From Oikopleura dioica (taxonomy: Eukaryota > Animalia > Chordata), in assembly GCA_907165135.1 (NCBI GenBank), contig OU015568.1:3782001-3846000 (forward strand): a stretch of 64,000 nt of DNA, written 5' to 3'. This document shows, one piece after another, positions 19,184 through 63,718 of this stretch (positions are counted from its first letter, which is position 1; each line of letters begins with the position of its first letter). The notes under the pieces are model-generated. The model was not told the origin of the DNA. It searched no databases and saw only the letters and a list, made by a program, of their open reading frames with translations. Both the position numbers and the translations under genes were made by a program.

Positions 19184-21535
19184 TCAACCACTTCCTGAAA
19201 GAATTAATGAAAATTCTGAAATAATGATGTTCAAATCCACCTTGAAAATAAAGCCCAATCGATGCGTGTCGCTGACTTTCTTCAACTCCGCCGCTAGAAT
19301 TCTCATGTCCGGAATCGCTTTGATTAAATCTCTAAATCTTCCTTGTTGTCTTTTTCTGTCAACCAGCCAGTGCTGACAGAGGAACCAGAATCGTTTGTTG
19401 AGAGCTTCTACTTTCACCGATTCTTGGAGGCCGACAATATCTTAACGAAAAAGCTTGAACATCATCAACAGAAATTTAGAGTACCGTGATTCAGAAAATT
19501 GATGAGCTTCATGATACAAAACTCATCATGAGTAATGTCTAGCGCTGCAAACTGACTGTAAACCGATGCAGTCTTCTTGATCAGCTTTAACTCTTCTTCT
19601 GTTGGCTCGAAGTTGCTAGAATTAGGAATAGAATGATGAAAAAGAGGAGAAACAAACCTGAAATTCGAGGAATTCGCAACTGCGACACCAAGGGTTTCGA
19701 AAACGGCACGATGATGGATTGTTAGTGATGAGAGGAGCATCGTTTCAGCCCTAAAAATTTGTTGAGTAGGAGATCTGATGAACATTGGTCATATGATATG
19801 ACTCATATCCATACAAATGAAAGTAATTTGGGCTGATTATTATGCTATGAAGATATCTTGATTCTATAAATTATACACACTAGAAAAGAATTGAAAGTTA
19901 GCTCACCTAGCTTAGTATCGAAAATTTTAAACCTACTCATTTTTTTTAAGTTTTATGGTTTTTCGATTCAAGGCATTTGGTAAAAATTCTTCATTTTCTT
20001 CAGATAAAAAATTCCGAGCAAATTTTAATTGATAGTATATTTTCATATGTTCCGCTTTTACAATACCGATTAAGTCATTCGATTCAATATATATTTGAAA
20101 TTTTAAGCCCCGATTTAGATATTGCTATTTTAAGTGTCGGTATCAGAAAAAAATTTTCTTAGTAGAAAGCCCGAGTCAAGTTCTACGCGTTTTTTTTTAT
20201 TTAAGCTCTTTCAGAACCTGACTCAGGCTTTCTTCTATGGTTAACAAGCCCTTATGTCAGATAACTTAAGTTATCTGCGTTATCCTGATTCTTATCTTAC
20301 CATGTGCTCATGAGTAGGGTCGTATGATCATGAAGTGATATTTCGCTGGAAAAGGGAAGCGCTTTTGCCCAGTCTATTTGTCGCCGCAATAATTCGTCGG
20401 CGGTTTTGGCGAGAGTCATCATCAGCGACTTTAAATTGGAATGAAAAAGAAGGTCAAAGCTTAATTCCTTACATCCGGCGTAAACGGGTCGGCGGCGGTG
20501 ATATCGCGCAGGGGTGGCAGGGCGCCGCGCTCCTCGATTTCGATCACGTCCCCGACCGCGTCGTGGGTGCGCTGCTCGATGCTCTGGGTGGCGGTGAGGG
20601 CGGGGGCGAAGTTGGTGTGGTCAAGCATTGTGGGGCGGAAAATCGTCGATGCTAGGGAATTTTTTTGAAGAAAAATCAAAATTTTTTAAGAAAAGATGAA
20701 ATTTTTGACGATTTTTTTCATCAAAAAGTCGGAAGTAGTAATAAGTTCTTACGTTGTCTAAGAGCAGGCGACTGCTCAAGCGCTCTCGAGATCGGAAGTG
20801 AACTTTCGGGCAGCCGAAGTGGCATGTGACTCTGGGACTGCGAGTGGGGCTGCGTAAGAGCCTGAATGGGATTGGCGGATCCGCCGCTGATCGCAGCGCG
20901 CTCCTCGACGAACACGGAGCCGTCCATCACGGCGGCAATTTCTTCCGGGGTCATTTGAATCGGCCCGATTGATTTGTTACGACCACCTGGCATTCCATCT
21001 TCGCGGATGGCTGAAATAAGGGATTAAGACCTTTGGTTACGCAACATTCCTTTTTGGTCTTAAGAAATTACCTTTTCTGTTCATTCCGCATTCGAGACAT
21101 CTTTTCAGCCGACAGTATTGACATCGATTTCGCTGTTTTCGCGACATCATACACTGTTTATCCCTCGTACATCTATACACTCTTCTGTTGCATATCGATC
21201 GTTTAAAAAACCCCTTACAGCCTTAACAAATGATTAAAAATAATCCCCCCAATAAGGGTGTCTACCTTCACAACTGATGATTCCATAGTGAAGTCCTGTT
21301 GCCCTGTCGCCGCAAATTCGACAACTTTTTTCAGCATTTTGACTTCCGCCCCTCGAGACTTCAGATGTTTCTAGAGTCAATATCAGCATATATAATCATA
21401 TTATATTTTTACCGGTTCTGACGGGAGAACGACTTTGTTGAAGAATCGAAGCTGCTGGCTGCTGATGACTTTGCACCATGGAGTGCACCATCATGTTTGC
21501 CGTGGGAGGCGTGTTTCCTGCCCCGAAGCCATTGC
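19184..21535 (-). CDS. NR6A1: Germ cell nuclear factor (nuclear receptor NR6A1); 5' exons may extend to ~22510 or beyond
   Basis: DBD exons CRICGDRATGLHYGIISCE|GCKGFFKRSICNRRVYRCTRDKQCMMSRKQRNRCQYCRLKRCLECGMNRK|AIREDGMPGGRNKSIGPIQMTPEEI match the GCNF-specific extension. LBD has TADELLRRQIDWAKALPF and RFRDLIKAIPDMR. Confidence 0.93.
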
Positions 21536-57366: not shown

Positions 57367-58214
57367 AGCGCTAGAAATTCGACGAGAGAAACAAGAATGG
57401 ACGAGTTTCAGCAAAAAAAGCTCGAAAAAGAGCTGAGCGAGTTGAAAAAACTCATCGACTTGCATTTCGTCCAACGAAGGAAGGATGAAGAAGAGCTGAA
57501 AGGACTTGAAGATCGAATCGAAAAACGAAAAGAGTATCGAGCTGCTCAACTTGCTGAGCGTGCCAGAGTAAGATTCCGGTGTTCTTCTCTTCCGTTGATT
57601 TCTTTTTGTAGAGGGAGCAAGAAAAAGAAGCGCGACTTCAAGCGGAAAAAGAGCGAAAAGAAGCGGAAGCTCAGCGAAGAGCCGATGAAGAAGCGGCTAG
57701 AAAGAAGGAGCTTCTTCAAGCTCTCAACGCAGCTGCTCATGGAAATCAACGACAAGGTCAGTTCTAGAGCTGTTAAGCGAGTTTGCTAAAAAACACTCTT
57801 TAGACAGGCGAAAGGGACGAGGCACAGAGCGAGAAAAGAAGAAGAAGGTTCTTGCCGAGCGAAGAAAACAGCTCAACATCGACCATTTGGATGTTGAAAA
57901 GCTCAAGGCGAAGGCGAAAGAACTTTTTGATCATCTCAATGTTCTCGAAAACTCAAGGTAAGAAGTGTCTCTTTTTCTCAGATTTCCTATGAAATATGGG
58001 GCTTATGGGGAATGTCAGCCAATCAAAGACCAGTACTCCTAAAAACTCTTGAAATGGTGAGAATCATGAGTAACCTTTAAGAATTACTCTGGAGAAAGAA
58101 ACTGGCGAGCAAAAATACGAGCTTGCTCTCTGTCGATACCGAGTAAACACCCTTAACGACGCCAACACCAAGGCAACCTCCAAGGCCCGCACTCGCGTTG
58201 GAAAGCTCCGATAA
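57367..58214 (+). CDS. TNNT: Troponin T (5' exons upstream not resolved)
   Basis: [45 protein letters not shown] and [32 protein letters not shown] match troponin T T1/T2 motifs; stop TAA 58212-58214. Confidence 0.92.
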
Positions 58215-59399: not shown

Positions 59400-60812
59400 A
59401 AAAAAATGACGTTTTTTCTTTGAATAAAAAAGAAATATACCGTGAAATTGAACAGCGTAAAATAATTAAGCATTCTGAAGCAAAATGAAACGAAATCAAA
59501 AGTCGTCGAAGAGATGATTTCTTCGGGCAGTTTCTTCATCCCAAGAATGTGAAGAAAGACGAGCATGGGAGTCCAATCGAATCTGCAATTAATTTTCGCA
59601 TTCTTTAACTCGGTTAGCCGGTTTTCGTTCTAGTTTCAACTCGACTCGTAATTAATGAACTCGTTTGCTTTTTCTAAGAACGCGATGACCGATCCTCTAA
59701 TTCGATGAAAACTGCGCGGGATTGGCGAAAAACGAGTTCAGCCAAGTCCTCTCCAGTTAGCCTGAGTTCTTGTTGCTCGAAGCTCTGTTTGTTTAGTTCG
59801 ATGTTGGAAAGGGCGTAATTATACATTTTCGAAAACTCGCTGGCCACTAATGCGCCGTTATCTGAATTCAATAATGACGTACCCCATTTATTCAAAATTT
59901 ATCTCACCTTTCAACACATCAGTTATATTTTCAAGGCTTTTTTGGGTGCAGTTTTCCGCCCTGAAATCGCCCATGATTTGAAGACTTGTTGAAGAAAAAT
60001 TGCCAGATTCAGACCAAGTTGGAAGGATTTGAGAGAGCTCGTTGCATAATTTGGTGTGGAAGTTGAGGGCGAAGAAATTTTCATTTTGCATGTCGGATAA
60101 GCGGATTTCAAGGAGATTACGGGACTCTGAGCATTTGTCCATCCTGTTGTTGTCTTGAAAAATATGTATTAAGACCTGGTTTTCATCTTTTTTCTCGAGA
60201 TAAAATCATTTGCCATGAGTTATCATGAGCCGGATCCAGAGTTGCAGATTTCTATTAATTTTTCTGAGCTGAGCTGAGCTGACCTGAGTAAAAATTTCTC
60301 TGAGCTGAGCTGAGATGAGCTGGCCTATTTCGGAGGTTACTGAGCTGAGCTGAGCTGAGCTGAGCTGGCCTTTTCAGAGGTCATTGAGCGGAGCTGAGCT
60401 GAGCAGACCTTTTGTTTAAGAGAGTTGAGCCGAGGTGAGCTGATTGAGCCTAGCTGAGCTGTTTTACTGTTTTTTGGTAGTAAAATTGTATTCAAATCAT
60501 TGAGCTGAGCTGAGCAAAGCTAAATTAGAGTTGTCTGAGCTGAGCAGAACAGATTATGTTCGAAAATAATTGATCTGAGCTGAGCTGAGCTGAGCAGATC
60601 AGATCATTTTCAAAAATCACTGAGCTGAGCGACTGCTCAGCTCACTCAGCTCAGCAAATTTGCAAGTCTGGCCGGATCCCGAACCTAATTCTTCCCTCTA
60701 CCCGTATTTTTCAATTTAAACTTACCTTTGAAGCTTAAAAACTTGATAATCAAGCAACCATGAATCAAAAGCCCCAAAAAATGAACGAGACTCCAACCAA
60801 TCGCGCAGCTTT
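59400..60812 (-). CDS. Unknown multi-exon protein; one small exon interrupted by a hAT MITE
   Basis: Exons LRDWLESR..KLQR|FGIRLMITH|DNNRMDKCSESR.. (ORF 59888-60142) and ORF 59674-59895; the model is tentative. Confidence 0.4.
60237..60670. mobile_element. hAT-type MITE (434 bp) with internal (CTGAG)n arrays
   Basis: Imperfect TIR CAGAGTTGCAGATTT / AAATTTGCAAGTCTG; perfect 8-bp TSD GCCGGATC (60229-60236, 60671-60678). Confidence 0.9.
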
Positions 60813-61951
60813 TCAAGCATATCATTTTTCATAAATCGACCTTCTCTTGATTTCAGAATTATATATCTGCGTCTATCTCTTCGCTCAGAAACGAAACGGG
60901 TTCACCAGATTTGGCGCGTTTCATTTTTGAAGATCCTTAAAGCTTCTGAAAAAATGCTAATGAAAGGAAACAGTGTTGGAACGTGTCATTCATCGAATGA
61001 ACCAGGGTTCTCTCTCTTTTTTTCGTGAAAGAGAAAGGCAAGATTTTTAACACAGCGCCAACAATAGGAACAGATCAATAGTAAGGCATCTTAAAAGCCA
61101 AAGCTTTTTGTAGTTTGAAATTTATATTTCAAATGAAATTCATCGAGCGATTTCATAAATTGAAAGTTCAAAAAGGAGAAAGATGAAAGGTGAGAAGTTT
61201 TCCTTGCTTTTGTAATTATTTCGGAGTTTCCATAGTAAATACGTAACGCAAATAATTTCGAACACACCTTGAGGTGGTTGTCCTTGACCCCATGCATCGT
61301 TCATTTATCGATTTTTATTAACCGCTCGTCAACTTTGCATCAAAATTTAAAATCAAAAGTCAGTTTTTGATCATCAAATTCATTATAAAACAAAGAGTAC
61401 ACTGCACTTCAATGACTGAAGGGGGAGGTCGACGAGGATCGGAATTTTCGTGACCAAAAATGCGGAAAAACCGGACTCGATAGCAGAATTTTGATTTTTT
61501 GGCTGTCAGAAAAAGCGTTTGAAAATTCAGGCGGTAAGAAGAAAATTTGTGTTTTATTCAAAAATTTTCGAGAAAATGAGTCAAAGAAGGGGTGTCTCTT
61601 GACCAAAAATCAGCCCCAAGAAGTCGTTTTTTCGGTCATTCTTCTATTCTATTATAAACTGCCGAATAATTGGACATAATTTATGTCACATAAATAAATC
61701 AAAGATCCGTAACGTTTATTTCGCCTTCTGTAACATTGTCATTTTCAAAACAGATCCGTTCAGATTCTTCGTTTCGTCATTGACTTCAGTAAATTTTACC
61801 GCGACTCAACTGGCCTCACCACGGCCTCGACCAGACTTCAAGGCCGTACGCAAATATCACTGAGTGGAGCGTTGCACTCTTCTCTCGTCCCATTCACCAC
61901 AATTTTCAATCACGAATTTTCGCAAAACGTTTTTTTTCTCAAAAAACAACG

Positions 61952-62709
61952 ATGTTCCACACTCGGAACGAAACTGGCAGAGTAAGAGCTTCATCAATCG
62001 ACAGTGAAGGGTAAGAAAAATATTTTTTATTCTCGATTATAATTTTCATTAATTTAAGACGTTCTCGTCCATCAACACCAGAAGGATCGATTCTATACGA
62101 TCTTCTGACAACCGGGAGATCAAAAGCTTCCGGAAATAGCTCTGCTAGTCAAGCTGCCTTCAAAAATACCCTCGGTAGTGATTTTCTTAAATTCCTTTTT
62201 CAACCCTTTTTTAGACGAGTCGATCAACTATCTGATCCGAAAATGCACCTTCCTGAAAATCCCCTCCCCGAACAACTTCAACTCATCCGCCGTGACTGGC
62301 TCTGCGTCTTTCTTATCAAATGCGCTCTCTCTGGTCTGACCCCAAATCTTGGACTCAACGACCCGAAAGAGCGGGAGATCTACGCTGAGTTCAAAAACAT
62401 GACAGAATTGTAAGTCCTATCAACCAAAGCTCCTCATCATCAAAATCTTCTAGCGTTCAAAACAGCGAAGCGACAGAAAACGAGTTGACAGACATCATAT
62501 CCGCAGTTGTCTTCAACGAACGCTCTCTCCAACTCTCCCGCCTGTCGCAGCAGCACCAGCTCCAACTTGGTAATATCCTTCTTTGCGTTTCTGAGGCGAG
62601 AAGAATGGACTCCCAGCTTCTTTCCTCAGCTCTTTTCAAAGATGTTGAGCTCCCGACTCGACGAACAATCACCTTTCTCCAACAACTTGCTTCGGCAAAA
62701 CATATGTAA
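61952..62709 (+). CDS. Nuclear receptor LBD without DNA-binding domain, NR0B (SHP/DAX1)-like; 1-nt frameshift in a C run at 62261-62264
   Basis: N-terminal PEGSILYDLLTT (cf. DAX1 QGSILYSLLTS); LDESINYLIRKCTFLKIP[L]PEQLQLIRRDWLCVFLI (H3-H5 signature); ELTDIISAVVFN (H8); QLGNILLCVSEARRMDSQLLSSALF (H10-11); no zinc fingers seen nearby upstream. Confidence 0.7.
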
Positions 62710-63343
62710 AATGCCCTTCAAAAGGCTCTTTTACTACATTCACTGACGATTCAGATCTTTATATCTGATGATTATGCTTTCTTTTTCCTCCCCAAAAAGG
62801 GGTCATTCTAGAGCGATAAAATGTCGAATGACTGATTTTTTCCTTATTCTTGCTAGCAAACAATTTTTTCAAACTCTACCGACCCCAGGAATTTTCGAAA
62901 ACAACGCTCTTTCAACAATTTATATCGCTCTGAATGACTCCGGAAATGCTCCCCTCTTTAAATTTTATCTGTCCATCTGTACACACTGGTGAGCGGTTGA
63001 ATGTCAGTTGGGCTATGCCTTCTTATGCAAACTCTGAGCAATGCTTACTTTAATCACATGTTTACCAGACTTTCCGTGGAATTTCTTTCCGCGGGATTTT
63101 GTTTTTATCTTTTTCCGACAAATTGAGAAGGGTCCAAGGTCATTCAAGTGCGAGCCAAAATAAATAAATGTCTCTCATTAGATTGTTACGCATTACTATT
63201 TATTTTCAAGAACGGAAAGAATTTGAAAGTGATCTAGCAAACTACATTAATTCATTGATGTCAGGAAAATAATTGGTTCAAAGAAAAAGGAATCATGCTT
63301 TCCAATTCTTTCAATATTAATTAAGTCGTCCCCGTCTTTTAAC

Positions 63344-63718
63344 TCAGTTGATCACTAAAGTTGCCACTGCAGATTTAAAAATTTTGAAAAATAAAATTCG
63401 CAATGAATCAACATTTCCTAAAATGAGTCGAAATATTATTTTATCACTGTTTGTTTCTCCGGGGAAAACATAAATACAGTTTTCCACAAGAATGACAGAT
63501 CCGGCGAAAAAACTCTTAAAATTCAAATTATTCGTGAAAGAACTATTTATATTAACCTGTTTTAAATATCCTATTAATTTCCAAAATTTGTCGCCAAGCA
63601 CCCAAATTTCTTTCGAAGGATAATTATCCCAGCCACTTTTGCCTCCTATCGTTGCGATTGATCCCGATGGAAGTCCAACAACACAATGCGCATAGACAGT
63701 ACTGAATTTGTACTCCAC
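63344..63718 (-). CDS. Kelch-like beta-propeller fragment
   Basis: YAHCVVGLPSGSIATIGGKSG..EIWVL..WKLIG shows the hydrophobic-GG..W blade pattern; the gene is probably incomplete. Confidence 0.45.
   Translation of the reverse strand: MEYKFSTVYAHCVVGLPSGSIATIGGKSGWDNYPSKEIWVLGDKFWKLIGYLKQVNINSSFTNNLNFKSFFAGSVILVENCIYVFPGETNSDKIIFRLILGNVDSLRILFFKIFKSAVATLVIN

Follow-up and report, generated by a model that had tools for sequence, protein, structure and literature searches.

Gene structure and transcripts

The DNA analysed here (the window) is a stretch of 64,000 nucleotides from the Okinawa assembly OKI2018_I69 of Oikopleura dioica. A four-exon gene lies on its forward strand at positions 61952-62709, in the pseudo-autosomal region (PAR) of the assembly. 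The gene, its flanking regions and its neighbours are listed in Table 1.

Table 1. Features at the locus. Positions are those of the window unless another sequence is named; LBD assignments are predictions.
Feature	Position	Strand	Remarks
Exon 1	61952-62010	+	Start codon and N-terminal tail MFHTRNETGRVRASSIDSE(G), with the RxRAxS motif conserved in the family
Exon 2	62059-62174	+	Encodes SRPSTP and the NR box GSILYDLLTT (62084-62113)
Exon 3	62215-62409	+	LBD from H3 to H5 and the stretch beyond (ESINYLIRKCTFLKIP / LPEQLQLIRRDWLCVFLIKCALSGL...)
C4 run	62261-62264	+	One base longer in orthologues (CCCCC in L001 and L005; CCCTC in L002)
Exon 4	62454-62709	+	C-terminal half of the LBD, from H8 to the equivalent of H12; stop TAA at 62707-62709
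5' UTR (unspliced) and promoter region	61700-61951	+	Colinear with the 284-nt 5' UTR of L005
3' UTR	62710-63165	+	Extends to AATAAA at 63159
Conserved 3' UTR block	63113-63165; L005 1340-1395; L002 9500-9560		
Canonical nuclear receptor gene	19465-21389	-	Zinc-finger exons including ...GCKGFFKR / CQYCRLKRCLECGM; zinc-finger motifs at 21199-21323; LBD exon ...DEFCIMKLINFLN
Troponin-like gene	57397-57789; L002 4025-4950	+	About 4 kb upstream in the Okinawa window and in the Norwegian scaffold
Inverted-repeat element	60283-60595		GAGCT-rich loose ends in RNA reads

The gene model is borne out by spliced orthologous mRNAs of sister lineages. Two environmental RNA contigs that are free of introns, L001 (1138 nt) and L005 (1893 nt), carry the orthologous coding sequence and align with the window exon by exon, the junctions falling exactly at the predicted splice sites; in both of them the acceptor used for exon 3 is AG 62213-14. 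The three introns are all GT-AG and 44-48 nt long. A preliminary description of this DNA, made from the letters alone, had placed a four-exon gene at 61952-62709, and the exon borders indeed match the sister-lineage mRNAs. Its estimate of about 190 residues has to be corrected, since the intact protein would have 206.

As read from the DNA, the ATG of exon 1 is the first in frame downstream of a stop at 61790. Exon 1 aligns to positions 42-106 of the L001 mRNA, and the same start is shared by the orthologous proteins P0002 and P0003 and by L005. At the other end of the gene, the product of exon 4 is 86-90% identical to its orthologues, with pN 0.07 compared with pS 0.71.

The 3' UTR of L001 aligns at 62938-63076. 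Expression of the exact Okinawa allele is almost unsupported: the support consists of oligo-dT metatranscriptome contigs reaching into the 3' UTR (62673-63007) and of coding-exon reads numbering about 1 in each of three bulk RNA-seq runs, with no joints listed. These runs say little, because the neighbouring genes are likewise without coverage.

Upstream, the gene order is kept between the Okinawa and the Norwegian genome, because the troponin-like gene lies on that side in both the window and the Norwegian sequence L002. Downstream, the order may differ between L005 and the window: the L005 transcript enters another ORF on the same strand, and the largest downstream ORF of the window (63344-63718) is on the minus strand. 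Reads of the three RNA runs pile up on the inverted-repeat element, with joints of the 'opposite strands' kind between 60283 and 60595. Its appearance is that of an expressed repeat or MITE with no relation to the gene described here.

The reading frame of exon 3

When exon 3 is entered through AG 62213-14, translation gives ...DESINYLIRKCTFLKIP, after which it continues out of frame as far as a stop at 62337-62339, the remainder of the LBD (LPEQLQLIRRDWLCVFLIKCA...) being in the -1 frame. The sequence at the break is ATCCCCCTCCCC in L001 and L005, ATCCCTCTTCCC in the Norwegian genome (L002) and ATCCCCTCCCC in the window. The C run at 62261, which the preliminary description had singled out for verification, is therefore one base shorter than its counterpart in each of three orthologues.

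The public annotation has been affected by this single base. Because of the one-base frameshift it splits the gene into g9513 (P0005, 99 residues, with out-of-frame residues at its end) and g9514 (P0011, 88 residues, beginning MTEF), so that these two OKI2018_I69 models are two halves of one gene; the stop-free stretch 62015-62407 is a 100% protein match to Oidioi.mRNA.OKI2018_I69.PAR.g9513.

The gene is under purifying selection. A codon comparison with L001 gives dS 1.17 and dN/dS 0.10, the latter value holding before the break as well as after it, and the segments downstream (pN 0.11 and 0.07) show the same degree of constraint as those upstream. There is no other damage: the splice sites are all intact, and the expected frames contain no stops. 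A dN/dS of 0.10 on either side indicates that the missing base stems from an error of assembly or from a lesion of very recent date. Of these two we lean towards the assembly error. The break is located in a homopolymer, and homopolymers are the places where long-read assemblies are expected to err; the intact splice sites and open frames, and the strong constraint downstream of the break, also argue against a real lesion.

That the frameshift is real is a more doubtful reading, in which the Okinawa lineage or individual would carry a very young pseudogene, a segregating null allele, or an allele rescued through another splice acceptor. The window, the only sequence available for this lineage, does read C4, RNA reads are nearly absent on the coding exons, and a full-length protein of Okinawa type is absent from a collection of 5.8 billion proteins. 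When metagenomes were scanned for the pattern spanning the C run, no contig of Okinawa type was found, only a Norwegian-type mRNA (L005) with C5. The rescue would use AG 62218-19, which retains an open frame and would yield an in-frame product without helix H3. It would cost the exon its best-conserved part and is unused in both spliced mRNAs that span the junction (L001 and L005), which splice at 62213-14. The same acceptor was considered as the normal form of the gene, since the frame is open, and was rejected because the conserved H3 would be lost and neither of the two mRNAs uses it. If the missing C is real, the tamer version of the finding is that one cryptic O. dioica species would just have lost its only NR0B-type corepressor.

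It is very improbable that the missing C is real and that the full protein is still made because the ribosome or the polymerase slips by -1 on 62261-62264. Re-reading base 62264 does restore ...KIPLPEQ... exactly as in the orthologues, and the roughly 45 nt before the run could take part in such a slip.

The same stretch is unusual in its conservation. Exon 3 opens with 45 nt (62215-62260) that are 90-93% identical in three lineages, compared with 55-80% for the rest of the exon, and the approximately 10 synonymous sites of this opening show 1 synonymous change, against an expectation of about 6-7. The comparison suggests constraint at the nucleotide level directly upstream of the C run.

Domain composition and predicted fold

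The family to which the protein belongs is so far known only from O. dioica and marine plankton sequences, the plankton members probably being other appendicularians. P0001 to P0003 are three O. dioica lineage variants with 82-94% mutual identity; P0012 and P0014 are full-length distant members (25-33% identity), and there are several fragments besides. The Norwegian model P0001 has an aberrant N-terminus (MLIFRRFSWSCAAKI...), which is wrong because the site of exon 1 lies in a run of N (about 8150-8300 in L002, scaffold FN654998.1).

The N-terminal organisation is kept across the family: RxRAxS, SRPS[T/S]P and SIL[Y/F]DLLT occur in this order, followed by the conserved core of the LBD. The short tail that carries the first two motifs looks, from its sequence, as if it could be phosphorylated. 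The third is an NR box of the LYxLL type, N-terminal to the LBD, and is invariant in every member that covers it, despite an overall identity down to 25-30%. The layout of GSILYDLLTT followed by an LBD, as first described, thus stands: the box is encoded where it was reported and is invariant in the family. The DAX1 repeat of Pfam (PF14046) matches the box of P0003 weakly (E 0.76). This is the only weak Pfam match related to nuclear receptors, but it is found in 1 of 12 members and at the level of unrelated noise hits, and is to be read as a hint only.

The protein has no DNA-binding domain (DBD). A six-frame scan of the whole window found no C4 zinc-finger motif on the plus strand, and the only receptor zinc-finger motifs in the window are those of the canonical minus-strand receptor gene (Table 1), which is 40 kb away and a separate gene. 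Upstream of the shared ATG there is an in-frame stop in L003, which encodes P0012 (TGA, 2 codons), in L004, which encodes P0014 (TAA, 4 codons), and in L005 (31 codons), whose 284-nt 5' UTR contains several stops. Stops thus precede the common ATG in the orthologous mRNAs, which means that the model lacks no DNA-binding exon; the colinearity of the L005 5' UTR with the window shows in addition that no sequence from further upstream is spliced in. The homologous methionine is the start in all family members. The original observation of a gene without zinc fingers is in this way borne out by the in-frame stops of three mRNAs.

The LBD is far less easily recognised. The queries were taken from single exons, from one uninterrupted stop-free piece of the genome and from database orthologues. 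Pfam PF00104 (Hormone_recep) gave no match even at E 10, with single exons or with any full-length family member. The window's own exons gave no matches when searched against Pfam one by one, or with phmmer (exons 3 and 4) against the PDB; nor did a profile of the three O. dioica proteins match anything in the PDB. A HMMER search of 1.84 billion protein representatives with the same profile returned no canonical nuclear receptor, the hits being family fragments and P0008, a spurious repeat protein. Iterated word searches with A4 and A6 added further family members and no bridge to canonical NR0B.

A profile built from the 12-sequence family alignment (A5) was run against 177,635 PDB sequences, and all 42 of its matches are LBDs of nuclear receptors. 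DAX1 (E 0.0021) and SHP (E 0.0078) are the first two, and ER and ERR come after them with E values of 0.24 or weaker. With a second alignment (A6) DAX1 is again first (E 0.0028), ER second and SHP third, so that the rank of SHP varies with the alignment. NR2 chains are absent at E 10 from both of these searches. The matches are weak (about 20 bits) and limited to the region from H3 to just past H5, including the ELA....F.E..E stretch after H5; the C-terminal half of the LBD, used as a profile of its own, gave no PDB match.

The region matched to DAX1 and SHP falls in exon 3. Its signature, F..L...[DE]Q..LL...W.E...L..A, given also as F..L...[DE]Q..L.R..W...L.LA in the comparison of A5 with the PDB, aligns column by column with DAX1, SHP, ER and ERR, which agrees with the H3-H5 signature noted at the outset; in the window the frameshift divides it between two frames. 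Language-model features from the ESM Atlas point in the same direction, PF00104 being found in 26 of the 30 nearest clusters for P0002 and in 27 of 30 for P0012, with an NR0B1 cluster among them. P0001 is named 'NR LBD domain-containing' by one source.

In order to obtain a structure, AlphaFold2 (AF2) was run. For the O. dioica orthologue, with a 7-sequence alignment, the model reached a pLDDT of only 42, and the fold assignment therefore rests on P0012, a family member with 30% identity, modelled on the family alignment with pLDDT 80.2 and pTM 0.71. Three structure searches with this model agree. Foldseek places SHP first (E 2.9e-4) and DAX1 third, the best 50 matches all being NR LBDs. The listed rows of VIA-align are also all NR LBDs, headed by DAX1 (Z 15.8, 2.5 Å over 155 residues) and SHP (15.5) and continuing with NR2F6 (14.9), TLX (14.6), TR4 and COUP-TFII (13.7), PNR (12.9) and the rest at 11.4 or below; NR2F6 and TLX follow NR0B at a distance of no more than 1 Z, a difference that the tool counts as a tie. 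The ESM Atlas shape search gives an NR0B2-like protein at TM 0.67 (177 residues, 2.8 Å), NR0B1 at 0.63 and the next at 0.32. The predicted fold of the family is the helical sandwich of an NR LBD.

Within this fold the O. dioica proteins lack about 20 residues around H6-H7 that their own relatives possess. The C-terminal AF-2 is divergent and is without the conserved acidic residue in the product of exon 4, as the earlier remark on a divergent AF-2 had anticipated. Taken together, the mRNAs, the profile and the P0012 model agree with the main claim of the preliminary description, an NR LBD without a DBD behind a box of DAX1/SHP type.

Relationship to NR0B and possible function

DAX1 and SHP were long regarded as vertebrate inventions. 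According to recent work, NR0B1/2 is ancestral in bilaterians (PMC13012086, 2026): a single nr0b1/2 with LXXLL-related motifs is present in annelids and molluscs, was lost in ecdysozoans, and was duplicated in vertebrates to give DAX1 and SHP (PMC13012086). As NR0B predates vertebrates, a tunicate NR0B is expected rather than anomalous, and the initial view of these receptors as best known from vertebrates is superseded by the reports from annelids and molluscs (PMC13012086). Nor does Oikopleura have a reduced receptor set, as had been supposed, since it has some 40 candidates for nuclear receptors (PMC3292500). Our literature search found no paper describing a tunicate NR0B.

On the basis of these observations we propose, with reasonable confidence, that the gene is a fast-evolving tunicate NR0B, descended from the single nr0b1/2 that is ancestral to DAX1 and SHP, with a layout like that of SHP and no DBD, and that its broken frame is an error of the assembly. 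By profile and by predicted structure NR0B is the nearest known relative of the family, and on the same comparisons orthology to NR0B is likely.

The resemblance to SHP (NR0B2) is one of architecture and shape. Like SHP, the protein has no DBD, is short, and has one LYxLL-type box; in SHP too the box directly precedes the LBD. SHP is the best shape match in Foldseek and in the Atlas, it gives the longest alignment of all in VIA-align (model residues 31-223), and its profile match (E 0.0078) extends over H3-H5 and the stretch that follows. The differences are an identity of about 16%, a length about 50 residues shorter with no second box seen, a C-terminal helix without the acidic AF-2 residue, and a gene with three introns.

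DAX1 (NR0B1), for its part, is the top match of each family profile (E 0.0021 with A5, 0.0028 with A6) and of VIA-align. The Oikopleura box resembles the core of the DAX1 repeat, with the weak PF14046 match lying at QGSILYDLLTNG, and the ELA...F.E..E stretch after H5 aligns. Unlike DAX1, the Oikopleura protein has none of the N-terminal repeats of 65-70 residues, carries one box only, and does not reach half the length of mammalian DAX1 (470 residues in the numbering of chain 3f5c_B). The Nr0b1/2 proteins of Platynereis and molluscs, compared here by their description only, also combine LXXLL-related motifs with an LBD, but they are DAX1-sized with a longer N-terminal region, whereas the Oikopleura protein is minimal (PMC13012086).

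The next-best structure matches (Z 12.9-14.9) are receptors of the NR2E, NR2F and NR2C groups (TLX, PNR, COUP-TF, NR2F6 and TR4), to which the similarity is structural only. These have ligand-free LBDs of repressor type. They also have a C4 zinc-finger DBD, which the Oikopleura protein lacks, and they are not known to have an N-terminal NR box.

An NR2-class receptor (NR2E, NR2F or NR2C), or some other receptor, might nevertheless have lost its DBD in appendicularians, acquired an LxxLL-type box by convergence, and come to work in the manner of SHP. NR2F6, TLX, TR4 and COUP-TFII are structurally nearly as close as NR0B, the similarity to NR0B in sequence is weak and confined to H3-H5, one of the two profiles ranks ER above SHP, and Oikopleura has many lineage-specific NR duplicates (PMC3292500). 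We consider such an origin unlikely. DAX1 leads both profile searches, from which NR2 chains are absent even at E 10; VIA-align and the Atlas shape search both place NR0B receptors in the first two ranks, and Foldseek has SHP first; the box is directly N-terminal of the LBD, as in SHP; and the one NR-related weak Pfam match is to the DAX1 repeat. Convergence of both box and LBD is moreover less parsimonious than descent from an ancestral nr0b1/2 (PMC13012086). Of the two origins offered in the preliminary description, a true NR0B orthologue or a convergent loss of the DBD, the profile and the three structure searches thus favour the first, while NR2F6 and TLX, within 1 Z, leave orthology short of proof.

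It is scarcely credible that the protein is not a nuclear receptor at all but an unrelated small helical protein matching LBDs by chance or through helical-bundle bias: Pfam is without a match, the search of 1.84 billion proteins retrieved no nuclear receptor, and chance Z scores of about 13 are frequent for helical models (VIA-align tool note), but the 42 PDB sequence matches, the best 50 of Foldseek and the listed rows of VIA-align are NR LBDs without exception, the NR signature aligns column by column, the Atlas shape match has TM 0.67 over 177 residues at 2.8 Å, and P0001 bears an NR LBD name in its source.

If the gene is an NR0B, its architecture suggests how it would act. A protein without a DBD would be unable to bind DNA. 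Its LYDLL box would instead dock in the AF-2 coactivator groove of DNA-bound receptors, candidate partners being NR5A/FTZ-F1, HNF4, ERR and RXR, and this docking would displace coactivators from them. The LBD, lacking the canonical AF-2 glutamate, may then hold corepressors and serve as a repressor platform. Both partner binding and repression are inferred here from the architecture only.

The gene would represent the NR0B type in the fastest-evolving chordate, with a divergence so great that ordinary domain searches fail to detect it, while annotation pipelines divide it or model it wrongly. Its minimal layout of one box and an LBD would provide a simple system for the ancestral function of chordate NR0B, and for asking which of the approximately 40 receptors of Oikopleura it restrains.

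Two short elements flanking the gene may be added. Three lineages with saturated silent sites share a nearly identical block, about 50 nt long, at the end of the 3' UTR, directly before AATAAA. Its sequence is CGACAAATTGAGA..GT[C/T]CAAGGTCATTCAAG..CGAGCCAA and has at its centre [T/C]CAAGGTCA, which we take to be the NR5A/ERR half-site consensus; in the window the block surrounds CCAAGGTCA at 63134-63142. The block could alternatively be a 3'-end or intercistronic signal, because the L005 transcript continues into the next gene. On the other side, 106 nt upstream of the ATG, TCAAGGCCG at 61838-61846 fits YCAAGGYCR. It lies inside an 11-nt island, TTCAAGGCCGT, that is shared with L005, the surrounding 5' region having diverged. 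Vertebrate Dax1 and Shp are targets of NR5A. The window contains 7 YCAAGGYCR sites compared with 2.9 expected, and two of them flank the NR0B-like gene.
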